DNA of 64,000 nucleotides, taken from positions 1 to 64,000 of the IMG/VR virus record IMGVR_UViG_3300025141_000020; one strand, given 5' to 3'. A program made the position numbers and the translations under genes. Every line of letters begins with the position of its first letter. Within the stretch, counting starts at the first letter, position 1. Below the pieces are notes generated by a model. It was not told where the DNA came from, did not search any database, and saw nothing but the letters and a program-made list of their open reading frames with translations. Below are positions 1,401 through 23,243 of the stretch, in pieces.

Positions 1401-2894
1401 TTAGTTTTGTAAAGCTTTTTCGGCTTCCGCTGCAGTTGGGTAGTCACCTCTATCGTCTAGGTAACCAACTACAAATCTTTCATCTTTACATCCATTAGTT
1501 GCGTAGGATTTGAACTCACCTCCAACAATGAATGGTTTACCACACCACACATTTTCCATGATTGCCATTGGTATGGTTAGACTTTTATCTCCGGTTACAT
1601 TTAGAGCTGTAATATCTAAAGTGGATATACACTCAGGTATTGTTTTTAAATTAGGATTTTCAGGTATAGATATGAAATCTAAACTTTTACATTGACATAT
1701 CTCTGATGGTAGTTCTTTTAGTATTCCTGAAATATGTAATACCTTAAGTTGTTTAAACCTACCTATAGAAGGTGGTATTTTAAATCCTTTTAGTATATTA
1801 CTATCTGGTTTAACTTTACCGTATCCTGAACCTGTTGATATTGTTATGTCTAGGTGTGCTAAGTTATCGGGTAAGGTGTTAAAGAATTCATCAAACCCAT
1901 ATAAAGCGACAAATTTTCCTAGTGCATCACCTTGTGGGTACTTAAGAGATACATGGTCTGTCATTTTGTCATTCTCTGTCATGAATTTTTCTTTAAAAAA
2001 TTCTTTAAGTTCTTCCATAGGGCCAGATAACATTTCTACTATATCAACACCTCTATCATCTATATCCATAAAATTGCTAGTTTCAAAATGAAACTGATAT
2101 CTATTTTTTGGTAATCCAGTTTGGGTGTGTTTGTCTGCATCACTCCCTCTTGGTTTTGATACTTCGGTGTCCGTTTTATCTAATATAACATATAGTGGAC
2201 CTTTTGGTATGTATGTATTTTCATAATAGGTCAACCCTGGAGCTGAAGTACACCATTGTGTTTCTTTATTTTGACCACCGTAATAACAGGCTGCTTCTTT
2301 ACCTAAAGGATTTTTTTGTTCGATTTTTATAACTTGCCATTTATCACCATCAAAAACTAGTGTTGACCCAGGATGTATCTCCAACTCTTTTCTTTCTGCT
2401 TTAGACATTGTTAATTCATCCTTACTAATATTGTAGTCCTTTACCGCATCAAATAATGCATCCGTACCTTTAATTTTATTTATATCTTTTTCACCCTTAT
2501 ATTTTTTCATTGTTTTAAGGCGGTCTAACATTAATAAATTGTCAGTTACCTTATATAAATCTTCGAAAAATTGGTCTTGTAGTTGTTCTAATTTAACTCC
2601 CCAATCGGGACTACCGTAAGCGTAATGTTTATCAGCCTCTTGTTGTAACCCCATAAATTGTTTAATAATCCATTGGGTGTATTTTCCTACTTTCTTAATG
2701 TCTCCACTGTCAATATCTGCATCTCCTCCCGGCTTAGTTGTGGGGTCTGCTAACATCATGGCTTTTAATTGTTCTACTGACATTAAAGCTTTTTTACCTT
2801 TCTTTTTTGGCTTTGTATATTTTGTCATGAAAATATCATAACGAGAACCTTCAATAATCAGTTCGGATAATACGTCTCTAAAGTTAAATGCCAT
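1401..2894 (-). CDS. Phage protein with a central YG..T.WCT domain and C-terminal leucine-rich repeats
   Basis: LRR-like units IPPSIGRFKQLKVLHIS / LKELPSEICQCKSLDFISI / LKTIPECISTL; central AACYYGG..TQWCTS...GPLYVI...YQFHF motif; TATTTATA motif upstream. Confidence 0.7.
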   Translation of the reverse strand: MAFNFRDVLSELIIEGSRYDIFMTKYTKPKKKGKKALMSVEQLKAMMLADPTTKPGGDADIDSGDIKKVGKYTQWIIKQFMGLQQEADKHYAYGSPDWGVKLEQLQDQFFEDLYKVTDNLLMLDRLKTMKKYKGEKDINKIKGTDALFDAVKDYNISKDELTMSKAERKELEIHPGSTLVFDGDKWQVIKIEQKNPLGKEAACYYGGQNKETQWCTSAPGLTYYENTYIPKGPLYVILDKTDTEVSKPRGSDADKHTQTGLPKNRYQFHFETSNFMDIDDRGVDIVEMLSGPMEELKEFFKEKFMTENDKMTDHVSLKYPQGDALGKFVALYGFDEFFNTLPDNLAHLDITISTGSGYGKVKPDSNILKGFKIPPSIGRFKQLKVLHISGILKELPSEICQCKSLDFISIPENPNLKTIPECISTLDITALNVTGDKSLTIPMAIMENVWCGKPFIVGGEFKSYATNGCKDERFVVGYLDDRGDYPTAAEAEKALQN

Positions 2895-2912
2895 GTTAAA
2901 TTAGTGTTTTTA

Positions 2913-2920
2913 TATAAATA
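2913..2920 (-). promoter_or_regulatory. Class II (putative late) motif TATTTATA
   Basis: The same motif (TATTTAT[A/T/G]) lies on the coding strand upstream of genes at 5509, 7358(+), 11433, 12022, 14303, 15919(+), 17163(+), 17215, 21050, 21918, 26021, 27884, 41865 and 54408. Confidence 0.7.
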
Positions 2921-2938
2921 TGTGTTAAGTATAAAGAA

Positions 2939-3637
2939 TTATAGGGTTTTGATATAGGATATTATATCCATTAGAGCATTAACATCTTTTTCACAATATT
3001 CTTTTATTTCTGAAATGTTATTGTCTTCATAATAGCTTCTATGTATGTTAGTCCCATCTACTTTTCCGTCTTTTGGTGTGTCTAATCCCAACACACTACA
3101 TATTAAATGTAATGCTGATAATCCTTTGTAAGACCCAAAGTTCCATACCTCTTTGGTATCTAGTGCTTTTATTTCCCATGGTTTAGTATCGTGAGAAGGC
3201 ATAATAGGTGAAGGTTTTATCTTATTTACCAACATTCTTTTACCAAGGTAAGGTAAATCAAATGTTTTGATGTTATGTCCACATAATGAAAAATCTAACT
3301 TGTAAACTCTATTTAAAAGTTTAACTGTTTCTTTTAATATCTCTTCTTCACCACCTTTAGTAAATGATTGTATTTTTCTTTCTTTAGCTGTAATGAACCC
3401 TGCACTAACACAAACTATTCTACCAAACTCTGGTAATAGTCCAGCGTATTTCTTAAATAGTTCTCCTTCAGACATTCTTTCATCTTCTGGATAATGTCTT
3501 CTAAAGTAAGACTCACCCATTTTATTCCATAAATTATAAAGAATTGTATTCTTTTCTTCCATTTCTTCTATGGTTGCATAAGACCCACAGGTTTCTATAT
3601 CAAAAAATAGTAATTTATTCTCCTGAATATTTTTCAT
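2939..3637 (-). CDS. DEDDy 3'-5' exonuclease (PolB-exo2-like, stand-alone)
   Basis: Exo I FFDIET, Exo II GHNIKTFD, Exo III YCEKD. Confidence 0.85.
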   Translation of the reverse strand: MKNIQENKLLFFDIETCGSYATIEEMEEKNTILYNLWNKMGESYFRRHYPEDERMSEGELFKKYAGLLPEFGRIVCVSAGFITAKERKIQSFTKGGEEEILKETVKLLNRVYKLDFSLCGHNIKTFDLPYLGKRMLVNKIKPSPIMPSHDTKPWEIKALDTKEVWNFGSYKGLSALHLICSVLGLDTPKDGKVDGTNIHRSYYEDNNISEIKEYCEKDVNALMDIISYIKTL

Positions 3638-3794
3638 CGTTATTTTCGTCTTTTAGTTTTTGGTATGTGTCTGAATCTACACTTACTTGTACTACTCTTT
3701 CGTAAACTCCTGGTTCTCTATTGAAGTATTCTACGGTTTCTCCTTTGTTAAGTGTTTCTACGTCGTCTTCACGTACCCAAATTAGTATTTTCAT
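3615..3794 (-). CDS. Small hypothetical protein (59 aa, not in ORF track)
   Basis: MKILIWVREDDVETLNKGETVEYFNREPG...; fills the gap, with an ATGA overlap to the upstream ORF. Confidence 0.55.
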   Translation of the reverse strand: MKILIWVREDDVETLNKGETVEYFNREPGVYERVVQVSVDSDTYQKLKDENNDEKYSGE

Positions 3795-3907: not shown

Positions 3908-3949
3908 AGCACAAAGATAATAAAAATTTATTTAATAATAAAATCTAGA

Positions 3950-5491
3950 CTAAGATTTTTCGTTTTTTATTTCTTCTTCTGGAAAAGGTAGTTTTAAGTT
4001 TGTAACCTCATCCATTATACCATCCACTTTAAAGTCCTCTGTTTTTGATATTGTGTCATCACCACTTAGTGTGTGTATAGTAACAGTATTATCTATCTCG
4101 TTAAAGTGACTTAACACCACTTTCCTCATATTTTTCCCTTCTGGTGTATGTATATCTAGTACCCATTGTTTTGGGTATGCTCCCCACATATTGGTATTAT
4201 TTCTAAACTTTAGGTGGTCCATTAGTTTTTTAAATACCTCCCGGTTATTTTTTGAGTCTTCGTAATTTCCTTTGTATTTTTCATCAATCTCATCTAATGT
4301 CCTCATCATAGCATAATTTATATCCTTCAATCCATCCTCGTCTATATCCCATGCATCATACCATGAATCTGACAAATTATACCCAATTTCATTTATGTCC
4401 CATTCCCTTAACTCACTAAAATTGTTTATCCCTCCACTACCTATTAATTGTAGTAACTGAGGATAACTTATCTTGGTGTAAAAGCCGTTGGTGGTAGCTT
4501 CCATTTCATATGTTACTTCCTGTTTAATTTCGTCTGCGACCGCTTCTTGTCTAGCTCTCCATACAGCGCACCCTATAGCCTCTAACACTTCCCACTGACT
4601 ATCGTCCCACTCTGTTCTAAAGTATCCTGTTAGAAAATTATCATATACACCTTCTGAATTAAAGATAGTAGTTTGACTGGTGGGGTTTATACCCTCCTCT
4701 TTCCAGTAATCTGGTTCGTATCTATTAACAATATCTATAAATTTTTCATTGGTTTTAGGTGAGAAGTGGTGGTCTATATATGTTAGTTCGTCATCGCTCA
4801 TCTCCTCACAGTCAGTATATGTTCCCATTGCAGAATCAAATGCCCAATCTTCATCTCCATCAATAACCAAATATGATTCTTTATATAAAGATGTAGGCGT
4901 AAACAACTCAATACCCCAATCTGAAAACTCTATAGTTTCAGTATCTTCCATATTATAAGGTGATATGTGGTCTCCTGCTAAAACTACATCATCACCAAAA
5001 AAATTATCAAGTTTGTCGATATTTCTTTCCAAATTTCTGGAACCACCTTCAATTATATCGTACACCGCTTTAGCAAATTGGTTTTTCTTAGAAAACCCTA
5101 GTAGTTCGTCCTCGGTATAAGGCATATTAAATTTTATTCTTTGTTTTGGGCTGTATCTTAACTTTAGTAGTTTAGAAATTTCTTGTTTGTGTGCAAGTAT
5201 TTTATGGGGTGTTCCGGCATTGTAACTCAATTCACTGAATAGAAGATAATCTCCGCTGTATAGGGTCGGCATTTTGGACCCTGTGTCTACGATAATGTAA
5301 CTTTTATCGTTAATTAATAATATGTAGGGGAATCCAACTGAACCTTTTATACGGTTTTCAGTGTGAGGCTGGACATCTTTTACCCAAGGTACTAATTCTT
5401 TTGTTGCTCCAAAATTAAGTGGTAGTATAAGTTTTCCGTCTTTACCATCGTAGAGTACTCTATGGTTTTTTATTTCTGTAAGATTATTCAT
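3950..5491 (-). CDS. Acidic hypothetical protein (513 aa), probably late
   Basis: Long ORF; TATTTATA motif at 5509-5516; no recognised domain. Confidence 0.75.
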   Translation of the reverse strand: MNNLTEIKNHRVLYDGKDGKLILPLNFGATKELVPWVKDVQPHTENRIKGSVGFPYILLINDKSYIIVDTGSKMPTLYSGDYLLFSELSYNAGTPHKILAHKQEISKLLKLRYSPKQRIKFNMPYTEDELLGFSKKNQFAKAVYDIIEGGSRNLERNIDKLDNFFGDDVVLAGDHISPYNMEDTETIEFSDWGIELFTPTSLYKESYLVIDGDEDWAFDSAMGTYTDCEEMSDDELTYIDHHFSPKTNEKFIDIVNRYEPDYWKEEGINPTSQTTIFNSEGVYDNFLTGYFRTEWDDSQWEVLEAIGCAVWRARQEAVADEIKQEVTYEMEATTNGFYTKISYPQLLQLIGSGGINNFSELREWDINEIGYNLSDSWYDAWDIDEDGLKDINYAMMRTLDEIDEKYKGNYEDSKNNREVFKKLMDHLKFRNNTNMWGAYPKQWVLDIHTPEGKNMRKVVLSHFNEIDNTVTIHTLSGDDTISKTEDFKVDGIMDEVTNLKLPFPEEEIKNEKS

Positions 5492-5523
5492 ATTATATAG
5501 TGTTATACTATAAATATTAGGAA

Positions 5524-5760
5524 TTAAATGTTATACTCGGTATAAGCTGACAATCTATTATGTTTAACTCTCATTAAAGTAGAACATTTTTCATACTCCT
5601 CATTAATTTCAAAATATTTTATTAATTTGTCTATTGTTCTATGAGGTTTTGTGGGATTAAAAAATTCTAAATCCATAATCTCAGTATCATCTTCAACAGA
5701 TGTAATTATAAACTCATAAGCTAATCTGTAAGCGGCATCTTTTTCTGTAAAATTAAACAT
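5524..5760 (-). CDS. Hypothetical protein with a UVR-like EEYEKC motif (start probably 5760 rather than 5820)
   Basis: LIKYFEINEEYEKCSTL; the shorter start removes the overlap with the upstream ORF. Confidence 0.55.
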   Translation of the reverse strand: MFNFTEKDAAYRLAYEFIITSVEDDTEIMDLEFFNPTKPHRTIDKLIKYFEINEEYEKCSTLMRVKHNRLSAYTEYNI

Positions 5761-5764
5761 ATTA

Positions 5765-5956
5765 TTATCTTTTACAGCTTCCTCTGATTTCATATTTGTG
5801 TCCACTATCACTGTTTTCATTTAACATTGTAGCGATTCGTACCGCTTCTTCTTTCTTTGTAATATCCCATATTTGTGATAGTCCGTCCGTTAATAAGACG
5901 TGAGTTTTTTTACCCGTTTTAAGGTCCATCATTACTTTTATTATATTATATGCCAT
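5765..5956 (-). CDS. Hypothetical protein (63 aa)
   Basis: Operon-like tiling. Confidence 0.65.
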   Translation of the reverse strand: MAYNIIKVMMDLKTGKKTHVLLTDGLSQIWDITKKEEAVRIATMLNENSDSGHKYEIRGSCKR

Positions 5957-6131
5957 TTTTATATTTTTTATTTAATAGTTTTACGTAAAAATCTGCCACT
6001 CCTGGACCTAGATTATCTTCCCATTTCTTTTTAAAATTATTAATTAAATTTCTTAATGCAGGTAAATGAATAAATTTATTATTCTTATTATTTAATACTC
6101 TCATTACAAAATCAAAATCTTTTTTAATCAT
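5946..6131 (-). CDS. Hypothetical protein (61 aa)
   Basis: Directly downstream of a class I promoter. Confidence 0.6.
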   Translation of the reverse strand: MIKKDFDFVMRVLNNKNNKFIHLPALRNLINNFKKKWEDNLGPGVADFYVKLLNKKYKNGI

Positions 6132-6135: not shown

Positions 6136-6166
6136 CAAATATAAAAATTATTTTTTACTTATTCAA
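6136..6166 (-). promoter_or_regulatory. Class I promoter TTGAAT-N17-TATATTTG (Bacteroidota -33/-7 type)
   Basis: Exact TAnnTTTG with TTG 20 nt upstream. Confidence 0.7.
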
Positions 6167-7202
6167 CTACCTCTAACTTAACTTTTAAAGTATTTAAAAT
6201 TCTTTTGGTTATCTTATATGGGTCTCCATTACTTGCTGGCCTTCTATCTTCTATATGCCCTTTCCAGTTATTTTGTACCGTGGAAACTGGAATTCTTATA
6301 CTAGCTCCTCTATCGGATACACCATAACTAAACTTTTCAATAGATTGTGTTTCGTGTAATCCAGTAAGTCTTTTTTCATTGTCACTCCCATAGTTGTTAA
6401 TATGTTCTTCATGATAGAAAGAAAAAGTATCACAAATACCTTCTATCATATCTTTTCCACCAAGTTCTCTCATTTTTTTGGTTGAGAAGTTCACATGCAT
6501 TCCTGAACCATTCCAGTCACCGTTTACTGGTTTTGGGTGTAATTCTACTGTAACTCCGTGGCTTTCTGTAATTCTATAAAGTAGGTATCTGCTAACCCAT
6601 AGGTCATCTGAAACTTTTAGTGCTCCTTTACCGAATAGTTGATATTCCCATTGTCCTAACATTACCTCAGCGTTGACACCGGTAATATCTAACCCAATAT
6701 TCATACATGCATCTAAATGTTGTTCTACAATTTCTCTACCAATAACTCTATCTGTCCCAACTCCACAATAGTATTTTCCTTGTGGTTCTGGATATCCTTC
6801 TTTGGGGAATCCTAGGGGTTTACCATCTTTCATTAATACATACTCTTGTTCGAATCCAAACCACCATTCCTCTTGGTGTCTGTGAAAATCGATATCCTCC
6901 AATTCTGCTCTTTCGTTAGTCTTGTGTGAAATACCTTTTTCATTTAATACTTCACATAATGCAAGATAAGACCCAACTCTTTGTGGGTCTGGGTAAACTC
7001 TCACTGGTCTTAGGATACAATCTGAATTATTGCCCACGGCTTGTTGTGTGGAACTACCGTCGAATGACCATTCTGGTAAATCTTCTAGGTTTGGTGTGGT
7101 AATCGTACCATTTAATTCTACAATTTTAGTTTTACTTCTTAAAGTTTGTTCTGGTTTAGTTCCGTCTAACCAGATATATTCAATCTTTGTTTTTATTGTC
7201 AT
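6159..7202 (-). CDS. glnII: Glutamine synthetase type II (auxiliary metabolic gene)
   Basis: EYIWLDG, WSFDGSST, GFEQEY, PQGKYYCGVG, NAEVMLGQWEYQ, WNGSGMH, RLTGLHET, RGASIRIP, EDRRPASNGDPY. Confidence 0.95.
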   Translation of the reverse strand: MTIKTKIEYIWLDGTKPEQTLRSKTKIVELNGTITTPNLEDLPEWSFDGSSTQQAVGNNSDCILRPVRVYPDPQRVGSYLALCEVLNEKGISHKTNERAELEDIDFHRHQEEWWFGFEQEYVLMKDGKPLGFPKEGYPEPQGKYYCGVGTDRVIGREIVEQHLDACMNIGLDITGVNAEVMLGQWEYQLFGKGALKVSDDLWVSRYLLYRITESHGVTVELHPKPVNGDWNGSGMHVNFSTKKMRELGGKDMIEGICDTFSFYHEEHINNYGSDNEKRLTGLHETQSIEKFSYGVSDRGASIRIPVSTVQNNWKGHIEDRRPASNGDPYKITKRILNTLKVKLEVVE

Positions 7203-7353: not shown

Positions 7354-7370
7354 TTTATATTTATAATCAT

Positions 7371-7682
7371 ATGAATGTTATTTTAAATAATAAAGAAATT
7401 CCGGTAGAAATTATGTCTACCCCTAATAGTATTTCTACTGGCATGATGGGTAGAGACCATTTAGATGGTGGTATGTTGTTTGTTTTTGAGGATGTAGGCG
7501 AACGTTCTTTCTGGATGAAAAATTGTTTGATACCTTTAGATATCATTTTTATGGTTAATGGTGAAGTTAGTGAGGTTTACGAAAATTGTGTTCCTTGTGA
7601 ATCAGAGCCTTGTGAAAGATATTGGGGTTTGGCTGATAAAGTTTTAGAATTAAATGGTGGGGAATATTTAAAATTTATATGA
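7371..7682 (+). CDS. DUF192 family protein
   Basis: GMMGR...GMLFVF...SFWMKNCLIPLDIIF...VLELNGG. Confidence 0.9.
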   Translation: MNVILNNKEIPVEIMSTPNSISTGMMGRDHLDGGMLFVFEDVGERSFWMKNCLIPLDIIFMVNGEVSEVYENCVPCESEPCERYWGLADKVLELNGGEYLKFI

Positions 7683-9616
7683 AAAGAAAAAAATTAATAT
7701 TATCTAAAAGTAGTCTTATAGATTTAATATGTGAGACGGTACTAGAAGTCTCTAATATTAATGAGGGAGGAGATACAGACACAGTTATGCCGACACGTAA
7801 ATCTCTTGGATTAGGTGGTAAAACAGCTTTAGATAGTAAGACATCTTCTTTTGTAAAAGCACAAAAAGATTCTAGTGAACACATTGGACATACAGATTAT
7901 GGATATAGTCCACACGCAGGGTGGAAACAGTTTTGGGCTGATTGGCAAAATGACGATTTCTATATCGGCGATAAGCATAGTCAGTATTGTCATAGCTGTG
8001 GACTCGGTTATCACGGATATGCCGAGGGAAATATAGATGAAGACGCGAAATTTAGTTATATACAATCTGGAACTGGTGATTTAGTTGCTGATGCAAATGA
8101 TATACAAAGCTATTTAAAAAACGAAGTGGGTGACAAATACAAGAACCTCGGAACAGATGGTACTTTTGGTGATGAAACAGCAAAAGCTGTAGGTGCTTAC
8201 TTAGGGTACCCGAATATTACATCAAAGGTGAAATTATTAGAATACCTTGCACCTAAATACCCAGATGAATTTGGGACAAAAGGTAAATCTGGTTATGGAA
8301 TTGGTGGTAAATCACAAGGAATAATAGCAGACCTATTGTCTGCAAAATGTGTAAAGGATTTGAGGGAGTGTATGGACAAATCTGATTTTGCAACAAAACA
8401 CGGTAAGACAAGAGAAGAATTTGCAGATATGTTTTGGAAGGCAGCTGTTAAAGCTAGAACAGAGGCTATAGATTGGATTATAGAGTTTTATAGTGACAAA
8501 AACCCAGATAATTTCAATAAACTTATTCCGGAAGATGAGCAGTTTAAAAATTTCTATTCTCTTTGGACTCTAAAAGACATAGTTGCCGCTATGCAAAATA
8601 ACCAGGATTTAGGTTTATCGAAATATGAGCTGCAGGGTTTAAATTACTTGAGGATGGACGTTTATAGTAAACTGCGTAATAAATTAGAAGAGATGAAGGG
8701 AGAGGAGAAGTATGAAACAGACTTAGACTACGGTGTATTTTCTAAATCACTTAGAATATTCTTTTGTTGTGAAGGGGATTTTTTTGCTTGGGTTAACGAT
8801 TCCCAATCTCTGTATCGATATAATGTAAATTTATATACTTTTCTTAACCCGAGTGAAGAGGGTTGGGAACATGACATGTTTAGTTCAACCTTACATGAAT
8901 TAGGACATATTGTAGATAATATTCTTTTGAAAGACCTGGGGGTAAAACCCTATCCGGGAGATATATATCAGGATGAAGATAAAACGACAGACTACTTGAA
9001 CCCTCCTCCTAAAGATAAGGATAAGAGAGGCCCTTATGTCACTAGAAAATCTGAGCTTTATGCGAGAATGTTTAATCTTAGACATTATTTTGATGTAAAG
9101 TCCACTATAAGTGGTGAAGCATGGGCTCAAGCATGGATGAAGAAGGTTAATAAGGGTGATATAATTTGGAATCCAGAAAAGACATTTGATGACCTTCCTG
9201 TACCTGAGTTTGGAATTTCTAAAGTTGGTGATAAGGTCTATTTGGAATTAACCTTTGAGCTTGTGTGTCGTCTATGGAGTGGTAAACGGTGGCAGAAGAT
9301 ATGTAGGGACCCTGAAAAATGGACGTATGGTGATATATGGGATTTTACTACATTTATAAAATATAAGATAGGTGATAAGGAGACATTTTCTACTGAACAT
9401 GGACTGGGAGCGTTACTAGCTACTTTTACTTTTGACCCTAACAAATTTGAAGTTGATAATAAAGACCCAGATGTTTTCTGGATTGTCTTTGATTTTAATA
9501 AGATTGCAGAAGCTAATAGATTATACGTAATGATGGACCCAAATGAGTTGGTGACTGATTCAGAGGAGTTTGCTGCCTTGGAAAATCTATATGACGGACT
9601 TCCAAAACCAAGTTAA
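7679..9616 (+). CDS. Peptidoglycan-binding-domain + HExxH zinc metalloprotease (645 aa)
   Basis: PGBD-like IQSYL...DGTFGDETAKAV; zincin LHELGH with downstream SELYAR; leader LILSKSSLIDLICETVLE. Confidence 0.65.
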   Translation: MKRKKLILSKSSLIDLICETVLEVSNINEGGDTDTVMPTRKSLGLGGKTALDSKTSSFVKAQKDSSEHIGHTDYGYSPHAGWKQFWADWQNDDFYIGDKHSQYCHSCGLGYHGYAEGNIDEDAKFSYIQSGTGDLVADANDIQSYLKNEVGDKYKNLGTDGTFGDETAKAVGAYLGYPNITSKVKLLEYLAPKYPDEFGTKGKSGYGIGGKSQGIIADLLSAKCVKDLRECMDKSDFATKHGKTREEFADMFWKAAVKARTEAIDWIIEFYSDKNPDNFNKLIPEDEQFKNFYSLWTLKDIVAAMQNNQDLGLSKYELQGLNYLRMDVYSKLRNKLEEMKGEEKYETDLDYGVFSKSLRIFFCCEGDFFAWVNDSQSLYRYNVNLYTFLNPSEEGWEHDMFSSTLHELGHIVDNILLKDLGVKPYPGDIYQDEDKTTDYLNPPPKDKDKRGPYVTRKSELYARMFNLRHYFDVKSTISGEAWAQAWMKKVNKGDIIWNPEKTFDDLPVPEFGISKVGDKVYLELTFELVCRLWSGKRWQKICRDPEKWTYGDIWDFTTFIKYKIGDKETFSTEHGLGALLATFTFDPNKFEVDNKDPDVFWIVFDFNKIAEANRLYVMMDPNELVTDSEEFAALENLYDGLPKPS

Positions 9617-9988: not shown

Positions 9989-11428
9989 CTAACTACCAAT
10001 TTTCTCTTTGATGGTATTAACTAGTTCTTTTTGTACCCATTTAACAAACTCAACATACCTTGTAGGTTTACTGTCCGCTTTTTTCTTCCATGTGCCTTCT
10101 GGGTTTCTAGTGGCTCTACTAAAGAAGTTTAGTCCACTTATATTGGTTATGCATTTATGCCCACCACTATTAGCTTGTATAACGTCCCAAGCTGGCACTG
10201 TTATTTTATCTAATACTATTTTTTGTTTTTCACTTAAATTATCCCAAGGGGTATCAATAATATCAATTGCCATGTTATAGTATTGTGAACCCTCTTTTGG
10301 CATATTTTGTAGGTGGTCTTTGTATAACGCGAATAAATCTGAAGTTTTAAAGCCAATACTATCATCTTGTGCTTTTGTTTCACCAACTCTCTTAATTACT
10401 GAAATAGGTATCATATGTGCTTTTAATTGTGGTTCTATTTTTTTAAGTACTTCTTGAGCTATATCTCCTAAGTTAACACCTTTAAGAGCTCTATCCTTTT
10501 TAAATGGATTGCACGAAGCTTGTACTAACCCCATTGGCCAAGCAACTACGAAGAAATCAGCTTCTGGGTATATTTTAAATGGTGTGTATCTATCATAAGA
10601 ACCCGGTTTAAATAATGCACCACCACCATATTGTACTATTATATTACCATCTAAAGTTAAATTATCACTTTCTTGTTGGGATTTGATGTATTCGGCTTGG
10701 TTTTGTGCCATATCTTCAGGTGAAGCAAATCCTTTTTCTTTTGCATATGAAGTTATATTTTGGTATATGTTTAGTAGGGATGGGGTAGAGTTCATTACCA
10801 GATTTTCTAAGAACCCAGGTTTATTTTTATAAGCTAATAATAACTTATTAGTTAAAAGACCTAACATCCATTTCTTTTCATATGCTTGGTCACCTTTTTC
10901 AAAATCCCTAATTAAGTTCATTACTTGTTCTGGTTCAATATCGTGTTTTGCGTAGTCTGCAGAATCTACGGTATTAATCATCATAATATCTTCATTACTA
11001 AAAATATCACTAGGACTTATGGTTTGTGAGATGGTTTCTACGTTTGACCTTGCTCCTTTAAATTGTGTTGCGGTGTCATCTTCAACACCTGCTTGTGAGT
11101 CATGGTGGTCTGTATGTATCTTAAAGATTGGTTTGCCGTGTGCAAAATCTACAAGTACCGGCATTACATCACCGCTTGCGTCTGGTTTTTTAACAGAAAA
11201 TTCTTTATCCCCATATTGTATAACATGTGAACCTATAACATCAATCCCATAGCTTTCAAGATAATTTTTCATTCCTAATGCTGATACTACTCCGTCTAGG
11301 TCTTGGTGAAAGTATATCTCTGCTTTTGGATATCTGTCTGCTAATTTGTTAATATCCCTAATCCCACCTTCATTTAAAAGTGACCCATTAATATGGTCTA
11401 GTTGTTGTTCTGTTATCTCTATTTTCAT
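9989..11428 (-). CDS. DHH-family phosphoesterase with a capsid-targeting-like leader
   Basis: HQDLDG, VDF, TDHH and C-terminal SGGH (DHHA1) motifs; N-terminus MKIEITEQQLDHINGSLLNE; TATTTATA 4 nt before the ATG. Confidence 0.8.
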   Translation of the reverse strand: MKIEITEQQLDHINGSLLNEGGIRDINKLADRYPKAEIYFHQDLDGVVSALGMKNYLESYGIDVIGSHVIQYGDKEFSVKKPDASGDVMPVLVDFAHGKPIFKIHTDHHDSQAGVEDDTATQFKGARSNVETISQTISPSDIFSNEDIMMINTVDSADYAKHDIEPEQVMNLIRDFEKGDQAYEKKWMLGLLTNKLLLAYKNKPGFLENLVMNSTPSLLNIYQNITSYAKEKGFASPEDMAQNQAEYIKSQQESDNLTLDGNIIVQYGGGALFKPGSYDRYTPFKIYPEADFFVVAWPMGLVQASCNPFKKDRALKGVNLGDIAQEVLKKIEPQLKAHMIPISVIKRVGETKAQDDSIGFKTSDLFALYKDHLQNMPKEGSQYYNMAIDIIDTPWDNLSEKQKIVLDKITVPAWDVIQANSGGHKCITNISGLNFFSRATRNPEGTWKKKADSKPTRYVEFVKWVQKELVNTIKEKIGS

Positions 11429-11442
11429 ATACTATAAATACT

Positions 11443-12006
11443 TTACAATCCTTCTATAAATTTTTGATGCTCTAACTCCCTTCTTTTAGCTAGTCCAGGA
11501 AATTTACTACTAACTCTATAAGTTTTAATTGCTTCCCCTGCTTTTTTATATTCATTAGTATCTAATGTGCCTATACTTTTTAATAGGGATATTACATCAG
11601 CCATTCTTAATCCTGAAGCACCACCATTATAGGATAAAGATAATAAAGCGTCGTACATATTTTGAGTTATTGGTACGTATATTCCTTGGTCCTCCCAATC
11701 CTTAAAAATTTTTCTTAGTCTCTTTGCGTGATAGTTAGAATCTTCTTGTAATTTCTCAGTGGCTTCCTTCTCACAATTTGTACCATCCCCTAATATATCA
11801 CCTTCTTTAACCCCCTCTGTATGTCCATATCCTATTGTCCATTTACCATCACCAATACTATATGCTTTACATTTTAAACCTTCCTCTTTTCTTATATGAC
11901 TCCAATACCATTGTGAAGCTTTTAAACTAGAAGCTCTCATAAAGTTAGAATTATCTAATTGTTCTGAAATTAGTTTAACTTGGTTTTCTGTAATTACTAT
12001 ACGCAT
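11443..12006 (-). CDS. GH24 phage lysozyme (start probably 12006)
   Basis: EEGLKCKAYSIGDGKWTIGYGHT (E-D-T catalytic arrangement), YDALLSLSYNGG, GLAKRRELE; leader MRIVITENQVKLISEQ. Confidence 0.9.
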   Translation of the reverse strand: MRIVITENQVKLISEQLDNSNFMRASSLKASQWYWSHIRKEEGLKCKAYSIGDGKWTIGYGHTEGVKEGDILGDGTNCEKEATEKLQEDSNYHAKRLRKIFKDWEDQGIYVPITQNMYDALLSLSYNGGASGLRMADVISLLKSIGTLDTNEYKKAGEAIKTYRVSSKFPGLAKRRELEHQKFIEGL

Positions 12007-12067
12007 AAAAAAGTCGTTTACAATAAATACAATCATAAACGACTTACTACATAAAGTAGTTATTTAT

Positions 12068-12967
12068 CTACATACAACTAAAATACCTCTCTCCCCTATC
12101 ACAAAGAATAGTAACCGCATTATTTTTATTGTTATCTCTTAGCCATTGAAATGCTGCGAATATATTAGCTGCAGCACTTATACCTACAAACAACCCGTAT
12201 TTTTTTGCTAAGTGTCTTGCACATTTTTTTGCACATGCTGTAGACACTGTTCTAACCTCATCTACCTTATCTAGGTCCACGAGGAATTTACTACCGTCTC
12301 CTATCCCTTGGATACCGTGAAGTCCTGGTTCACCACCACTCATAACAGCACTCTCTGTTGGCTCTATTGCTACTGTCTTTATGGTAGGCCACATTTCTTT
12401 TAAAAACTTATCGGTACCCATAAGGGTACCACCAGTTCCTGTTCCAGCCACAAAGACGTCTGGTGTACACTCTCTTATTTCATTAGCATCTTTAAATTGG
12501 TTGTATATTTCTGGACCTGTGCCCATATAATGTGCTTCTATATTTAACGGGTTGTGGAATTGGTTGCAATTAAACCAACCATTTTTATTACATATGTCAT
12601 CTCTTAAAGCTATTGCTCCATCAAAGTCTCCTTCTTCAACCTCAATTAATTCTGCACCATAAAACCTAAACATATTTTTCCTTTCTTCAGACATATTAGA
12701 TGGCATGATAATAACCATTTTATAACCTCTTTCCGCGGCTAACATTGCAAATGAGATACCACTATTACCTGATGTCGCTTCACATAGGGTATCACCTCGT
12801 TCTATTAGTTTTAATTTCTCTGCATTATTAATAATAAAGCTTGCCATTCTATCTTTAACAGAACCACTAGGATTCATAAATTCAGATTTGCCCCAAACGG
12901 TAAAATCCCCAATGGTAATGGGGATTAACGGGGTGTTACCCACATAATCAGATAGTCTTTGTTTCAT
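12068..12967 (-). CDS. cysK: Cysteine synthase (O-acetylserine sulfhydrylase, PLP-dependent; auxiliary metabolic gene)
   Basis: GNTPL, NPSGSVKDR (PLP lysine), EATSGNSG, GTGTGGT, HGIQGIG, DRGERY. Confidence 0.92.
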   Translation of the reverse strand: MKQRLSDYVGNTPLIPITIGDFTVWGKSEFMNPSGSVKDRMASFIINNAEKLKLIERGDTLCEATSGNSGISFAMLAAERGYKMVIIMPSNMSEERKNMFRFYGAELIEVEEGDFDGAIALRDDICNKNGWFNCNQFHNPLNIEAHYMGTGPEIYNQFKDANEIRECTPDVFVAGTGTGGTLMGTDKFLKEMWPTIKTVAIEPTESAVMSGGEPGLHGIQGIGDGSKFLVDLDKVDEVRTVSTACAKKCARHLAKKYGLFVGISAAANIFAAFQWLRDNNKNNAVTILCDRGERYFSCM

Positions 12968-14682: not shown

Positions 14683-15858
14683 TTATCTTCCTACCTCTTT
14701 TATATATTTATCTTGTGTGTCTTCCCACGATAAATCAATTACATCCCAATAAAATAATTGTTCTGGTTTAATTCTATCTTGGTCACACATATTTTTATAT
14801 CTTCTTATTGCTTTTTTCTTCCACCATTTTTCTGTATAAGGTATGTCGTCTTTGAATTTCTTTTTTAATTTTAAGTCTTCTTCTATTATTTCATTTCTTA
14901 GAAACTCACAGCCGTTATCATACATCATTGCAAGATAGACCCCTCTCTTGAACCCGTGGTCATAATCTGAACCCTTTATACCACAATGTTTAAAAACCTT
15001 GTTAATTATGTTCTGTTTAGGTCCTGTAGCGCTTATAGCTTTCTTATGTTCTTCTGGGTGATTATCTTTCAACCATTTATTCCAAGGTAAATATGCACTA
15101 TCATCTGGTTTTAACCTAACCTTACCGGATGTTTCACCCATTGTTTTGAAGTGCGGCATTCCATTGTACATTGAATTTATACCATATAGTGATGTTGTTC
15201 CTACAGCTATTAGTTTGTCTCCGTATTTTTCTTCCCAAGCATCTCTAATAGTCTTACAAGTAGTTAGTGCTGCTATTAATTTGCCCATTAACATATTATA
15301 CCCACCTGGTTGAGTGGAGCATATAGTTGTGGCTATAGCTGTATTATTTAGTTTGTGTTGGTCGAACTTATTGGTTTTATCCCAACCTATGTAAGCGTCT
15401 CTAACTTTAATACTTGTAACGTCAGACCCCAAACAAATCAAACCAAGGACTTTCTCTGTTTTCCTATCTCTAACCCAGAATTTCATATTACGTCCAGGAT
15501 TTGCAACCCATTCCATTGTATGGATAAGCTTACGATAGTTTACCCATTCAGTAACTCCCTTTCCTGGTTCTGCTATTTCAACATAAGGTTCTAAGTCTTC
15601 AATTTGTTTTATAGTCTTTTCTAAATTATCTAAATCTGATGGTAACCATAGATTATATCTGTACGTGTATAATTTTTTCTTTATCTTAGACATCTTACCA
15701 CCCTTATTCATTTCTTGCCACTTTTTATAAAGTGTTTGTTCTTCTACTGACATTTCTTTAAGCATGTCTAAATTATCGATTAGTTTTTGTTTCGTCTCCT
15801 CGAAATTAAAAGTGTATTCTGACTCTATAATATCAAATATTGTTGTTTGTTCTCCCAT
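14683..15858 (-). CDS. DUF4338 / Druantia DruA-like protein
   Basis: PGRNMKFWVRD...LGLICLGSDV.SI.VRD.YIGW...GYNMLMGKLIA...TTSLYG..SMYN...GETSG. Confidence 0.8.
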   Translation of the reverse strand: MGEQTTIFDIIESEYTFNFEETKQKLIDNLDMLKEMSVEEQTLYKKWQEMNKGGKMSKIKKKLYTYRYNLWLPSDLDNLEKTIKQIEDLEPYVEIAEPGKGVTEWVNYRKLIHTMEWVANPGRNMKFWVRDRKTEKVLGLICLGSDVTSIKVRDAYIGWDKTNKFDQHKLNNTAIATTICSTQPGGYNMLMGKLIAALTTCKTIRDAWEEKYGDKLIAVGTTSLYGINSMYNGMPHFKTMGETSGKVRLKPDDSAYLPWNKWLKDNHPEEHKKAISATGPKQNIINKVFKHCGIKGSDYDHGFKRGVYLAMMYDNGCEFLRNEIIEEDLKLKKKFKDDIPYTEKWWKKKAIRRYKNMCDQDRIKPEQLFYWDVIDLSWEDTQDKYIKEVGR

Positions 15859-15941: not shown

Positions 15942-16190
15942 ATGGCTTGTACTAATTGTAAAAAGAACGCTAAGACTAAAACAGATAACTTAAAAGTTGG
16001 CGCTGAGTCTATTTTAAATTCATTGGATTCCTCGTTGGAAGAACAGAAACTTAAATTAGCTGAAAAATTGTTAGATGGTTCAACTAGTGTATTAAATAAT
16101 CTGGAGAAGGTTGCTGTAACTATTTTTGGGTGGATTCCTTTAGCCGTTGGTTATTATTATATAATTAAATTTATTATTTCTTTATTTTAA
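15942..16190 (+). CDS. Small CxxC protein with a C-terminal TM helix
   Basis: MACTNCKK...VAVTIFGWIPLAVGYYYIIKFIISLF; TATTTATG at 15919. Confidence 0.7.
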   Translation: MACTNCKKNAKTKTDNLKVGAESILNSLDSSLEEQKLKLAEKLLDGSTSVLNNLEKVAVTIFGWIPLAVGYYYIIKFIISLF

Positions 16191-17199
16191 AGTTTTCTCC
16201 TTCTGACAAACTTTCTAACATTCTTATTTCGTCACCATGTAACTCTTTAGGCATTATAATTTGGGGTTTAATCACCAGGTTGCCCGATTTTCCGTTTGGG
16301 GTTTTCATTCCTTTTCCGTTCACACTAAAATTTCTAGTTATATCGGATAGAGGTGGTACAGTTATTTTTATAGCTCTTTCAAAATGAGGTATTTCTATAG
16401 TCCCTCCAAGAATCATATCCATAATCGGTGTTTGTGGTTCATAAATTAAATCACTAGCTAATAATTTAAAGTGTGGGTGTCTATTTATAACGACCTCTAT
16501 TAGGAGGTCACCAGGATGTCCTTGGTAAATCTCGTCTCCACCACCTTTATAAATAAAAGTTTGTCCTGTTGATAGGTTGGATGGGATTGTAAAGTCTACT
16601 ACCCTATCTTGAGTTATACCTCCCTTTCCTTTACAGTTAGTACAAGGTTTAATAACAATTTTACCTCTCCCTGCACAACTATTACACTGGTGTCTTTGTA
16701 CTTGTCTAAAGAAAGCGTTTCCAGCAACCTTTTCTATATGTCCTGTCCCGTTACACGTACTACAATTAACACTTTCACCACCCGCTCCTACACAAGCAGC
16801 ACAGTTAACGTTTTTTCTATATTTTAACTTTTTTGAATGACTAAAGTACATATCTTCTAAGTCTACTCTTAGTGGTATATTTAAATTTCTACCTTTATTA
16901 ACCCTTTGTTGTCGTTTGCCTCTACCAAAAAATTGACCAAAAAGGTCTTCCATTTCTGGACCACCTCTGTGGTGACTTCTGTGGTGACCACCAAATGGGT
17001 TTTGTTCACCCATGTCATATCTTTGTTTTTTTTCTGGGTTACTTAAGGTATCGTAAGCTTCACTTACTTCTTTAAAAACCGTTTCATTACCGCCTTTATC
17101 TGGGTGATGTTGTTTAGAAAGCTTACGAAAAGCCTTTTTTATGTCATCTTGTGATGAATCTCTATTTATATTTAGAGTTTTATAGTAATCTTTAATCAT
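16174..17199 (-). CDS. dnaJ: DnaJ (Hsp40) chaperone
   Basis: J-domain HPD, four CxxCxGxG zinc repeats, C-terminal GDL motif. Confidence 0.95.
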   Translation of the reverse strand: MIKDYYKTLNINRDSSQDDIKKAFRKLSKQHHPDKGGNETVFKEVSEAYDTLSNPEKKQRYDMGEQNPFGGHHRSHHRGGPEMEDLFGQFFGRGKRQQRVNKGRNLNIPLRVDLEDMYFSHSKKLKYRKNVNCAACVGAGGESVNCSTCNGTGHIEKVAGNAFFRQVQRHQCNSCAGRGKIVIKPCTNCKGKGGITQDRVVDFTIPSNLSTGQTFIYKGGGDEIYQGHPGDLLIEVVINRHPHFKLLASDLIYEPQTPIMDMILGGTIEIPHFERAIKITVPPLSDITRNFSVNGKGMKTPNGKSGNLVIKPQIIMPKELHGDEIRMLESLSEGENFKIKK

Positions 17200-19194: not shown

Positions 19195-19211
19195 AATGTA
19201 AGTGTAATACA

Positions 19212-19691: not shown

Positions 19692-19727
19692 AATAATAAT
19701 AATTGAATGGGTTGGTTGGTAAAGCGT

Positions 19728-21038
19728 CTATTGAGTCTTTTTACTATAAGACCACAATTTTTTCATATTACTAATCTCAGTATTAACACCTTCCTTAACT
19801 TGTTTTACTTTTTGTACATCGGGTGAATATCTTTTATCGTTACTCATAGCTCTTTGTTGAGCCTCTATTTTTTCTTTTTTACGATTAATTTTTTTCTTTA
19901 TTTTTTCACCTAACTCACTAGGTACTACATTGCCAAGAGGGGTACCATCTTTGTCCACTTGTGCATTACCTGTTTCAGATGAACCCTCTAAATAATCGGA
20001 CAATCTACCTATGTCTCCAACCCCATCAGCATCTTCTAGTCCCATACCTCTCCAATCATCAACAAACTCGTCTTGAGTCTCATCATTTCTATAATACTGG
20101 TATTGACCGTCAGCATTCTCTTTAGAGTGTTCAGCAAATGGGAATTTAGGGTCGTCATTGCCTTTAAAATCACCATAATCCTTAAATTTCTTTTCAAAGT
20201 CTTTGTGGTAAGCTTTAGTCTCTTTAGTGGACTCCTTACGTGACTTTTCAAATTTTTCGTATCCTGGTATACTAACATTTTTAGCTTCATTAAGTTTCTT
20301 TCTTACCAATTTTTTAATTGTATTTGTTGTACTTTCGTTAACACTAACCTCTTCATCTTTACTTAATGGTGCTACAAAAGCTCCTGCCATTCCTGATGTA
20401 GTTGCTTCCTCTACTTCTTCCTCACTCTTTTCTTCTGAATCACCAATTATTTGGCTCTTCTCTAATAATTTCATAACTTGTGTGAAGGGTTTTCTAAGTT
20501 CTGTCCTATCATTAAATAATTCTGGTAACTCTTTAAGTGCCTGGTCCAAAGCAGTGCCCCTCAGACTCCCGGCTCTAACAAGTTTCTCAATTTTTTGTAA
20601 ATTTTTTAACAGTTCATTGCTTTTTGCGTCTTGGTTTATTTTCTTTTTAAGTCTCTCATAAAGGCTTTTTAAACGTTTTTCTACATTGTAGTAATTACTT
20701 TTTGCAGAGTTTAACATAGTTGTTTGTTCACCCATTTCTTGTCGTTTAGTGAATTTAGCTAGTGAGACAGAACCTCCTTGGCTAGATATAAATCCTGAAC
20801 CACCACCAATAGCTTTTACTTGTTCTTTAACAATACTATTTATATTGTTCTCTAGGACCATTTTTTCAGCCATATCTGTAGCTGCATCCTCTAAAGCTTC
20901 TTCAATTACAATAGTATCTTTATTTGTTAATGTAAGACCTTCATTATCTCTAGCTAATGCATGGTTTTCACCAATTCTGTTAACTGCTCTTTCAATAATT
21001 TTACTTAGTTCTTCACTTGTTGCTAATATATCTGACAT
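19728..21038 (-). CDS. Putative prohead core / internal head protein
   Basis: E/K-rich, many (L/I/V)xE sites, EEATTS motif, TATTTATA at 21050. Function inferred. Confidence 0.5.
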   Translation of the reverse strand: MSDILATSEELSKIIERAVNRIGENHALARDNEGLTLTNKDTIVIEEALEDAATDMAEKMVLENNINSIVKEQVKAIGGGSGFISSQGGSVSLAKFTKRQEMGEQTTMLNSAKSNYYNVEKRLKSLYERLKKKINQDAKSNELLKNLQKIEKLVRAGSLRGTALDQALKELPELFNDRTELRKPFTQVMKLLEKSQIIGDSEEKSEEEVEEATTSGMAGAFVAPLSKDEEVSVNESTTNTIKKLVRKKLNEAKNVSIPGYEKFEKSRKESTKETKAYHKDFEKKFKDYGDFKGNDDPKFPFAEHSKENADGQYQYYRNDETQDEFVDDWRGMGLEDADGVGDIGRLSDYLEGSSETGNAQVDKDGTPLGNVVPSELGEKIKKKINRKKEKIEAQQRAMSNDKRYSPDVQKVKQVKEGVNTEISNMKKLWSYSKKTQ

Positions 21039-21062
21039 AATCTTTTTATTATAAATATCTTA

Positions 21063-21671: not shown

Positions 21672-21913
21672 TATCTTACTCTTTTTAATTCTGATTGCCA
21701 CATACCACGTCTAAACCAGAATGTTTTATAAAGTTCTAAAGTAACTTTACTTATAATGTCCACAATCTCACTTCTAGTCTTTCTTCCATTTTTTATCTGT
21801 AAATCAATTAATTTTTCAATCTCATTTTTAAATTGTGGTTTAGTAATAAAATCTTTTATCTCTTTTCGAGCTATTACTCCAATTTCTTTTTTATCTGTAT
21901 TAGTTAATGCCAT
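21671..21913 (-). CDS. Late hypothetical protein
   Basis: TATTTATA 4 nt before the ATG. Confidence 0.65.
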   Translation of the reverse strand: MALTNTDKKEIGVIARKEIKDFITKPQFKNEIEKLIDLQIKNGRKTRSEIVDIISKVTLELYKTFWFRRGMWQSELKRVR

Positions 21914-21925
21914 TACTTATAAATA

Positions 21926-22300
21926 TTAGTTAACATTCGATACTACCCATGATGCGGTAACAATTGTTGCTGCACCTAAAAAGAAGTGAATTACGGGTTT
22001 ATTATACCATTTTGGTCTTAATTCTTTTGTTAAATCCATATATAAATCTATTCTCTGGTTTAATAGGTCTGTCTTCTCACCCATAAAAGCTATATGTAAA
22101 CTATCTTGTATATGTAACGTCTTATAATTTGTAATTTGTGTATTTAATAAATTAATCTCTATTTTCTGTAAACTATCATTCTGTTCATACACTTGAAATA
22201 GTGAGTCCATTTCAACCACTTCTTTTTCAGTAAAAGTGTGTGTTTGACTAAAAACCCATACTGGGGTAAGCAACCATAATATTAATACTAGTTTTTTCAT
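21926..22300 (-). CDS. Secreted coiled-coil protein with a C-terminal hydrophobic helix (spanin-like; start probably 22300)
   Basis: Signal peptide MKKLVLILWLLTPVWVFSQ; coiled coil; C-terminus PKWYNKPVIHFFLGAATIVTASWVV. Confidence 0.55.
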   Translation of the reverse strand: MKKLVLILWLLTPVWVFSQTHTFTEKEVVEMDSLFQVYEQNDSLQKIEINLLNTQITNYKTLHIQDSLHIAFMGEKTDLLNQRIDLYMDLTKELRPKWYNKPVIHFFLGAATIVTASWVVSNVN

Positions 22301-22304
22301 ATTC

Positions 22305-23243
22305 CTATGTTCTCCATTTTCTATTTCCACAGCATTCGCTTGCGGCAACAGCAATATTTCCTCCTCCTTTGATGCCGAGCTTTTTTGCGTCTGCATCAGA
22401 TATTTCAAGGTTTTTATGGTACTCCACCGCTTCACCATCAGGGAAAACAAGTACTCCTCCACCCTCATCATAATATGGTCCTGCCGAGTTACCTTGGTCG
22501 GAGATACAAATTACTAACCCTCCTTTTTCCCAGTCGTAAGGAATCCACTTCATACAACCATCCTTAAACCAATCTGGTTTCTTTGTTCCTGGATTATCTT
22601 CAATCCTCATACAATCTACAAACATTTGCCATCTATTAACATCACCTAGTCCGATAACATATTTAAGACAAGCTTTAATCCTATCACAATCATTTCCGGA
22701 TTCTGCTGGAATGTCTATATCGATAAACCAATCGTCACCATCTATCTCTATACTATCTCCACCATCATCAGTCCCTTGTTGTTGTTTACAATTACATTCT
22801 CTCTGACATAAAATATACGCTGCTGAATCTTTAGGGCTTGCGCTACCGTAACAATACCCACAAAGTGAATTAAGGGTATTCCATCCAACTTTTCCGTCTA
22901 CACTTAACTGTCCAGCATCTCTTTGGAATTCTTCTACTGCTTTCTTTGTTTCTTTTTCAAATTTACCGTCACAATTAGTCCAGTTTTCTATACATCCTTC
23001 GTTTATTCCACCACCTTGTTTTGTTGGGTTATACGGTCCCATCTCCCCACATCCTTTTGCTAAAAGATGTTGTATCATTTTAACCACATCACCTCTAGAC
23101 CCTCTTTTAGCTACCTTTATCTTACACCATATATCACATGGGACATCACCTTCCCTAATTCTCCCACCACTATATTGTTCAGATATAACTTGTGAAATTA
23201 TTTCAGTTAATTGTGATTCAGTTAATTTAATTTTTTTCATCAT
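22305..23243 (-). CDS. Cys-rich peptidoglycan-binding-domain protein with a capsid-targeting-like leader
   Basis: RGSRGDVVKMIQHLL...DGKFEKETKKAVEEFQ...LSVDGKVGWNTL (PG_binding_1); leader MKKIKLTESQLTEIISQVISEQ. Confidence 0.75.
   Translation of the reverse strand: MMKKIKLTESQLTEIISQVISEQYSGGRIREGDVPCDIWCKIKVAKRGSRGDVVKMIQHLLAKGCGEMGPYNPTKQGGGINEGCIENWTNCDGKFEKETKKAVEEFQRDAGQLSVDGKVGWNTLNSLCGYCYGSASPKDSAAYILCQRECNCKQQQGTDDGGDSIEIDGDDWFIDIDIPAESGNDCDRIKACLKYVIGLGDVNRWQMFVDCMRIEDNPGTKKPDWFKDGCMKWIPYDWEKGGLVICISDQGNSAGPYYDEGGGVLVFPDGEAVEYHKNLEISDADAKKLGIKGGGNIAVAASECCGNRKWRT

Follow-up and report, generated by a model that had tools for sequence, protein, structure and literature searches.

Why should a DHH-type phosphoesterase, a lysozyme and a peptidoglycan (PG)-binding protein, encoded by the same phage and otherwise unrelated, begin with versions of one short leader? 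The question is raised by a stretch of 64,000 nucleotides (hereafter the window), positions 1 to 64,000 of the IMG/VR virus record IMGVR_UViG_3300025141_000020, which in full has 210,568 bp, a GC content of 33.6% and an estimated completeness of 66% (CheckV). A preliminary description of the window had quoted the N-termini of these three proteins together with those of a zinc protease and, as weaker cases, of a leucine-rich repeat (LRR) protein and of the product of the open reading frame (ORF) 19728-21038; all six read as they were given. Here we argue, with a probability of roughly 0.62, that the leader shared by the first three is a propeptide that loads proteins into the prohead and is then removed by the prohead protease. 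Judged by its sequence features and by analogy, it would be a counterpart of the capsid-targeting sequence (CTS) of phage T4, new in both sequence and length.

Detection and anatomy of the leader

A profile was built from the leaders of this genome, widened with those of relatives, and used to score all six-frame ORFs, all called N-termini, 3,398 internal 32-residue windows and reversed sequences. Ten N-termini in the 210-kb genome reach 22-40 bits, against maxima of 13.5 bits for the internal windows and 7.1 bits for the reversed sequences. The motif, which we term the class-1 leader, is real, N-terminal and well above chance. Three of its bearers lie inside the window, namely the DHH protein (30.3 bits), the lysozyme read from its second ATG at 12006 (25.1 bits) and the PG-binding protein (39.8 bits, the top score in the genome), so that the common leader described for these three holds. 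The other seven genes start at genome positions 95219, 144305, 176912, 186564, 188464, 205953 and 207482, and an eleventh copy, of 16 bits, is found about 28 residues into the ORF 95649-96476.

In summary form the leader, of 20-22 residues, reads MKK-I-[KR]-L-T-E-S-[DQ]-L-x-x-I-V-K-R-V-I-x-E; 55 of 59 leaders have this length, counted from Met to the last Glu. The logo from 65 distinct proteins, M-K-K-[IV]-[KR]-[LI]-[TS]-E-[SEN]-[QDE]-L-x-x-[IL]-[IV]-[KRE]-[RK]-[VI]-[IVL]-x-E, shows two near-invariant Glu residues (63/65 and 54/65), each preceded at -2 by L, I or V. The final Glu stands at a fixed distance, has I, V or L at -2 in 51/65, and conservation drops immediately past it. The hydrophobic positions display a heptad-like spacing, which fits an amphipathic helix, and a charged or polar residue recurs every 2-4 positions. 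The logo has no unbroken hydrophobic stretch of about 10 residues or more, such as a Sec or lipoprotein signal peptide or a signal-arrest-release (SAR) anchor would require. Several synonymous codons encode the conserved residues; the constraint therefore acts on the protein, and an explanation at the RNA level was rejected on the same ground. The hydrophobic-x-E ending that had been taken to unite the six quoted N-termini is conserved in the class-1 logo but uninformative by itself, since a triplet of the [LIV/M]xE type ends at residues 12-25 in 32% of all genes of the genome.

Distribution and modularity among relatives

Relatives of the major capsid protein of this genome are encoded in at least 598 IMG/VR stretches, the best 80 of which are 64-92% identical; the record therefore belongs to a large uncultured clade. 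The capsid-gene neighbourhoods of these 80 relatives, five larger records and the loci recovered with a degenerate DNA pattern (see below), 2.08 Mb in total, were scanned for leader hits of at least 14 bits. The scan returned 301 hits, of which 289 (96%) are N-terminal and three C-terminal. They comprise 218 distinct complete tagged proteins with a median of 137 residues, which fall into 128 families unrelated by BLAST. An alignment of one representative from each of the 128 families has the leader as its consensus and nothing beyond it, with an invariant E8 and a conservation of at least 90% for M1, L11 and E21. Few of the representatives have a Pfam domain (lysozyme in two, LysM, PG_binding_1, one sigma-70 factor, DUF6576 and Kyano_Gp96), and most tagged proteins are small ORFans and not enzymes. 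Complete genomes of 257-321 kb encode 10-18 leader copies each, often on small ORFs arranged in tandem.

The leader is almost confined to phage records. The degenerate DNA pattern, which encodes LTESDLxxIVK[KR]V, has four sites in 596 Gb of prokaryote genomes as opposed to at least 120 in IMG/VR, where the contigs reach 321 kb. All four of the former are N-terminal and lie on low-GC phage-like contigs, two of them from Bacteroidota metagenome-assembled genomes (MAGs) and one from a Prochlorococcus single cell. This last contig, QCKH01000009.1 of the Prochlorococcus sp. AG-409-L21 single-cell assembly (64 kb; loci L118 and L119), has two tagged ORFs; the assembly also has a Peptidase_S77 gene on its contig 9, which is probably this one. 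A phage of the clade, in or on the sorted cell, seems to be the source, which would bear on host range.

The head module and its maturation site

By its gene content the genome is that of a T4-type jumbo phage with a T4-type head module, which lies outside the window. It includes a gp23-type major capsid protein (genome 147401-149197; PF07068 and PF07230 are among the Pfam matches of the module), a putative scaffold of acidic character (149232-150701, pI 4.4), a gp20-type portal protein and the large terminase (TerL). The prohead protease invoked by the preliminary description was located within the module as a gp21-type Peptidase_S77 protein (PF03420, 92 bits; 150869-151570) that shares 37% identity with T4 gp21 across 164 residues. 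Of the ten large records to which the leader alone had led, nine likewise encode Peptidase_S77, among them all five complete genomes.

In T4, cleavage of gp23 after Glu65 removes a 65-residue propeptide (PMC5694885). In our alignment this site, LTE65/A66 (the slash follows the Glu), falls on LINE60/A61 of the clade, and the Glu and Ala are invariant in T4, in the nearest cultured phage and in five clade members. The ends of the leaders, e.g. VINE/Q, LLNE/G and VISE/Q, are of the same type as this predicted maturation site of the capsid protein (LINE/A).

No close match to the record was found among deposited phage genomes by megablast. The nearest cultured phage is Flavobacterium phage vB_FspM_immuto (hereafter immuto), with 37% identity in the capsid protein. 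The hosts of the clade are probably Bacteroidota, because this relative infects Flavobacterium and the leader pattern has matches in the two Bacteroidota MAG contigs. Membership in the bS21-encoding huge-phage clades was considered and rejected, as no bS21 gene was found. The names of the five homologues that were looked up are all absent or read "hypothetical protein", and none is informative.

Leader-bearing and candidate proteins of the window

The DHH protein combines a 20-residue class-1 leader, MKIEITEQQLDHINGSLLNE, followed by GG (11369..11428, minus strand), with a DHH/DHHA1 phosphoesterase body (9989..11368, minus) that has DxD at 43-45, DHH at 107 and GGH at 422-424. Its Pfam DHH match is weak and below the cut-off; despite this, the three motifs support the assignment, as do the best Foldseek matches (PggH, archaeal RecJ and pAp phosphatase, with probability 1.0 and low TM-scores of 0.27-0.41). 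In the AF2 model (mean pLDDT 70.5) the leader forms a separate helix at residues 7-16, the Glu-Gly-Gly junction falls in a low-confidence stretch at 13-23, and the folded domain begins at residue 26. The family has 4,133 homologues, with about 60% identity or more among the listed members, and an [LI]xE/[GST]G junction directly precedes the DHH domain in 114 of the 114 listed homologues that keep this domain. The leader ahead of the junction varies from 6 to 110 residues, with forms of 7 (MKKLIKE, the commonest), 9, 14, 20 (class-1) and about 102 residues. Constancy of the junction while the preceding leader varies is as predicted for a processing site. Many of the homologues (P0056-P0060, P0079, P0089-P0119) have a C-terminal M23 peptidase, GH19, PG_binding_1 or SET domain; such fusions connect the DHH family with the cell wall and with virion-associated lysins.

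The lysozyme has a shortened class-1 leader of 15 residues that ends in LISE (11962..12006, minus) and a Phage_lysozyme domain starting at residue 40 (PF00959, E 2.3e-19; body 11443..11961, minus; PHROG endolysin families also match). Translation probably begins at the second of its ATGs, at 12006, and not at the first (12036), because the element TATTTAT at 12023-12029, discussed below, falls downstream of the latter. The PG-binding protein is Cys-rich and couples a 21-residue leader, MKKIKLTESQLTEIISQVISE (23178..23240, minus), to a PG_binding_1 domain (PF01471, E 2.8e-7; body 22305..23177, minus). A leaderless Amidase_2 protein is encoded at 24123-24716, near a membrane protein at 23243-23560; as it can act as the endolysin, the tagged lysozyme would be an extra wall enzyme. 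Outside the window, the tagged protein encoded at genome 94359-95219 appears HAD-like.

The case of the putative zincin metallopeptidase is different. Its N-terminal segment (7679..7765, plus), with candidate sites at VLE23 and INE29 followed by GG, scores only -1.2 bits on its own. The body (7766..9616, plus) has HELGH at 406 and a PG-binding-like segment; the Pfam ATLF match is weak, and weak Atlas leads point towards PG_binding_1. Its orthologues (P0140-P0149), some of them merely 23-42% identical overall, keep ...LILSESSLIDLI..TVME/A or ...ETVLEVSNINE/A, conform to the pattern MKRKKLILSESSLIDLIxSTVME/A and score up to 13.2 bits. Since the orthologues retain the leader, that of the window protein is best described as a diverged copy with Lys in place of the first conserved Glu. 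To this extent the leader claimed for the zinc protease stands, through its orthologues and not through its own score. A scan of IMG/VR for close relatives of this protease found none.

The two weaker examples do not hold up. The LRR protein (body 1401..2849, minus; a weak LRR_14 match, with PF23598 in many homologues) starts with a short helix of 15 residues ending in IIE (2850..2894, minus) that is not class-1 and receives no profile score. Its family of 2,839 proteins has a leader type of its own: the 120 listed members all begin with another helix of 13-17 residues, MxFxxhhxxhhhE/xSRYD. The N-terminal helix of ORF 19728-21038, 24 residues to IGE (20967..21038, minus), is marginally leader-like at 7.8 bits, which places it in the top 0.2% of internal windows; its body (19728..20966, minus) matches no Pfam family above the cut-off. 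The orthologues keep RIGE/NH at residue 24, and the I-I-E at residue 16 that had been quoted is not conserved. The C-terminal domain of this protein (about residues 230-436) is common to 184 cluster representatives; their N-termini vary, and some score as leader-like (P0325, P0331 and P0334, 10.9-14.3 bits).

Two genes adjoining the terminase have what might be called half leaders. The product of L005:12572-13888 (minus) has the first half, MSKKIKLTEAPP.. (10.3 bits), and that of L005:13892-14842 (minus) the second, MPKNRKKLITKLINE/G (9.5 bits). At 5.4 per 100 residues the latter is denser in [LIV]xE than any other protein measured, and it is possibly a core protein destined for degradation.

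The TATTTAT element

The preliminary description had placed four of the six genes directly behind TATTTAT and the other two in operons headed by it, and this is borne out. On the minus strand it lies 5 nt ahead of the DHH start (11434..11440), 16 nt ahead of the lysozyme start (12023..12029), 19 nt ahead of the LRR protein start (2914..2920) and 12 nt ahead of the start of ORF 19728-21038 (21051..21057). The remaining two genes are downstream in strings headed by the element: on the plus strand it is found 6 nt ahead of a DUF192 gene (Pfam) that overlaps the start of the zinc protease gene (7358..7364), and on the minus strand it heads the string of genes from 26007 to 22305, in which the PG-binding gene is last (26022..26028). 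The genes of this string are probably co-transcribed, because they are tightly spaced.

Across the genome there are 168 copies, 64 of them in the 9.4 kb of intergenic DNA and 57 no more than 60 nt upstream of a start, with spacing peaks at 4-6 and 11-19 nt. The extended consensus is (not T)TATTTATAaTAAAA, and no -35-like conservation is seen upstream. TATTTAT is thus a real gene-start element. It precedes 8 of 11 leader genes as against 41 of 187 others (p = 8e-4), and is also found ahead of the protease, portal and terminase genes, of many large structural-type genes and of some non-structural ones. The kinds of genes that it precedes, together with the analogy to T4 late promoters, suggest that it may act as a late promoter.

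Mechanistic interpretation and alternative explanations

We favour the interpretation of the class-1 leader as a CTS-like propeptide because its measurable features match the T4 design, in a clade with T4-type head machinery, while the tag itself has another sequence. The leader genes would be transcribed from TATTTAT(A) elements along with the head and tail genes. The amphipathic helix of 20-22 residues at the extreme N-terminus would then dock the protein on the scaffolding core of the assembling prohead, and the gp21-type serine protease would cut after the Glu at the leader end ([LIV]-x-E), and perhaps after the first conserved Glu too, to free the mature protein inside the head. At least part of the cargo, i.e. 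the lysozyme, PG-binding proteins, the zinc peptidase, the DHH phosphoesterase, the HAD-like protein and many small ORFans, might exit with the DNA at infection; such delivery into the host is a further step, for which the case is weaker than for prohead loading. The earlier proposal of a T4-like tag that loads enzymes is thereby kept in part: leader, protease, site and modularity fit it, whereas only three of the six examples are canonical and the cargo is for the most part not enzymatic.

Several observations weigh against this interpretation. The leader is absent from immuto, the nearest cultured phage, and its profile matches nothing in the T4 genome at E values up to 10; a tblastn search with a tagged protein for a cultured relative likewise gave nothing meaningful. 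The clade is uncultured, and the role ascribed to the leader is predicted from sequence. The helix has low confidence in the AF2 model, and E-[GST]-G ahead of the DHH domain could be conserved for structural reasons and not as a cleavage site. Within the set of this genome, [LIV]xE triplets in the cargo bodies number 17 as against 29.7 expected, yet the ratio is 1.00 across 62 cargo proteins when relatives are included (other genes 1.08); depletion as a mark of cargo that survives beside the protease was therefore rejected as lacking robust support. One tagged protein of a relative is a sigma-70 factor with regions 2 and 4 (E 1e-12 to 2e-15). This factor may belong to the cargo and would then, if packaged, enter the host along with the DNA; alternatively, the tag may have another role. 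A few copies of the leader, finally, are C-terminal.

In these C-terminal cases the class-1 motif stands at the extreme end of a protein of about 250 residues in three relatives (..VRLTESDLVRLVKKIINEQIG, then stop; L026:~5149-5901, L066:~5302-6051 and L021:~8445-9173, all plus strand), where a cut at the first x-E site would detach the helix from the rest of the protein. In T4, too, Alt bears a propeptide at each of its ends (PMC9026906).

The main rival to delivered cargo also accepts that the leader loads the prohead, with the difference that most tagged proteins would be assembly or core components, degraded and expelled like T4 gp22, gp67 and gp68. We consider this unlikely, while taking it seriously. 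Many tagged proteins are indeed small and very acidic, with a mature pI of 4.0-4.7 in 5 of 11 here, near that of the putative scaffold, a tagged family of about 160 residues adjoins the capsid gene in relatives, and the lack of an overall [LIV]xE depletion in cargo bodies would be expected under such a scheme. On the other hand, it is not obvious what the folded enzymes among them (lysozyme, DHH, PG-binding and LysM proteins) would do in assembly, and the larger cargo proteins of this genome are poor in [LIV]xE, with 0-1.2 per 100 residues against 3.7 in the scaffold. The cargo pI is bimodal and extends to 9.8, and the repertoire of 128 families turns over quickly, unlike core assembly proteins.

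Less probable still is a leader that is never cleaved and serves as a docking or oligomerization helix for a partner outside the capsid, be it the Hsp70/DnaJ pair of the phage itself, a membrane complex or a replication compartment. The heptad-like spacing of the hydrophobic residues, the rare C-terminal copies and the tagged sigma factor would all suit such a helix, and the phage seems, from N-termini read by eye, to encode both Hsp70 and DnaJ. Such docking leaves unexplained, however, why 96% of the copies of the motif begin at Met1, why its conservation ends exactly at [LIV]-x-E, why the DHH junction is kept amid leaders of 6-110 residues and why the leader co-occurs with Peptidase_S77.

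An export or lysis-timing signal for wall enzymes, akin to a signal peptide or SAR anchor, is very improbable: several tagged proteins do act on peptidoglycan and the PG-binding gene is just downstream of the amidase and membrane protein genes, but the leader lacks a hydrophobic core, wall enzymes are a minority among the tagged proteins, and the true signal peptides of this genome, e.g. MKKLTYLTLMGLTCILVACGG, look quite different. A chance or compositional resemblance among K-, I- and E-rich N-termini of an AT-rich genome, for which the GC content, the [LIVM]xE triplet near 32% of N-termini and the failure of three of the six first-named examples to match the profile might be cited, is rejected for the class-1 leader by scores of 22-40 bits against at most 13.5 in internal windows of the same proteins and by the recurrence of the motif in hundreds of relatives with 96% of copies N-terminal, and may apply to the LRR and 19728 N-termini alone.

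If prohead loading and removal by the protease are the function of the leader, several consequences would follow. Injected phage proteins act before any phage gene is expressed, and most of them are unknown; a leader that a profile can detect would give a handle on those of a large uncultured environmental clade, with hundreds of candidate early effectors, the leader being present in at least 120 IMG/VR stretches. It would also provide a second, independent tag for loading foreign proteins into capsids, a use to which the T4 CTS has already been put, and would mean that the design of tag plus protease predates the T-even phages and extends beyond them in the T4 superfamily. More speculatively, and as a view that we hold to be rather doubtful, the leader might be a portable head-loading tag that exposes the whole packaged and injected proteome of the clade from sequence, 10-18 proteins per genome and at least 128 families in all. 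This would consist mostly of ORFans, possibly anti-defence effectors like T4 Ip1-3, along with wall enzymes, a sigma factor in one relative and a conserved DHH phosphodiesterase that, on reaching the host, might destroy nucleotides used as immune signals; the motif described in the following section might represent a second loading route.

A second terminal motif and other genes

Four proteins of 150-945 residues, encoded in an "island" at 173-186 kb of the genome (L006:11590-11650, L006:17923-17988, L007:2006-2071 and L006:12052-12117, all minus strand), begin with a second motif, E-[IV]-N-R-x-[KR]-E-I-M-G-L, which recurs at N-termini in relatives with 24-50 bits. Similar strings end several proteins here and in relatives, including the putative scaffold (..FSRMKDLMSKL, L005:5232-5270, minus). 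As a match to this class-2 leader the scaffold C-terminus was rejected: with the profile of N-terminal copies a relative's scaffold scores 6 bits against 8.1 for the reversed control, so that the likeness is suggestive by eye and not significant. The motif, EINRxKEIMGL in short, may be a second loading route.

Other genes complete the picture of the phage. A DnaJ-like N-terminus (..HHPDK) is seen by eye in the product of window 16174-17199 (minus), as is an apparent Hsp70-like protein (MAKVIGIDLGTTNS..) at L005:18878-20749 (minus). The gene at window 14683-15858 (minus) has a Pfam match to DruA (Druantia defence protein A, E 3e-24), which is unexpected in a jumbo phage of lytic type. Auxiliary genes encode a glutamine-synthetase-like protein (window 6159-7202, minus), a PLP-dependent cysteine-synthase-like protein directly upstream of the lysozyme and DHH pair (window 12068-12967, minus) and a full sigma-70 factor (window 26029-26829, minus). 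Very large ORFs of 2,883, 1,387 and 1,254 residues (window 54456-63107, 45309-49472 and 49477-53241, all minus) presumably form a structural block.

Comparison with known systems

The closest precedent is the T4 CTS, an N-terminal propeptide of 10-19 residues that is the sole feature common to otherwise unrelated internal proteins; these require it to enter the prohead core, and gp21 cuts it off after a Glu (PMC9026906; PMC12373910). In T-even phages the injected proteins were found through their common leader, and all three T4 internal proteins proved to be inhibitors of host restriction enzymes (PMC12373910). The class-1 system resembles that of T4 (IPI, IPII, IPIII and Alt) in having a short N-terminal leader on unrelated proteins, a gp21-type protease and an (L/I)-x-E end, as well as cargo genes that are numerous, small, fast-evolving and often in tandem (PMC9026906; PMC12373910). 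It differs in that there is no sequence similarity between the leaders, that the class-1 leader has 20-22 residues instead of 10-19, with two conserved x-E sites flanking the amphipathic helix, and that the tagged proteins include enzymes of up to about 70 kDa (lysozyme, DHH phosphoesterase, zinc peptidase), in an uncultured clade with genomes of about 250-320 kb.

Jumbo phages with a homologous prohead protease are also represented by phiKZ, SPN3US and 201phi2-1, in which this protease cuts after Glu, the propeptides are thought to target proteins to the prohead and paralogues have conserved N-termini (PMC5694885). Their propeptides are mostly longer than 100 residues, specific to each protein and cut at S/A/G-x-E, whereas the clade has one short tag with L, I or V at -2, reused on at least 128 families, in place of long propeptides. 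A peptidoglycan hydrolase carried in the head and released at infection is known from T7 gp16-type head-internal ejection proteins. The likeness to these extends to a wall-degrading enzyme in the head, which for the present clade is predicted from the leader and the genes; the T7 core proteins are not known to have a shared removable leader or gp21-type processing.

A literature search on leader motifs and capsid targeting, limited in its coverage, returned work on T4, P1 and SPN3US only and nothing on this clade. The principle is one known from T4, and what is new is the tag, with its sequence, its length and its two flanking x-E sites, the scale of at least 128 families on which it is used, and the clade that uses it.

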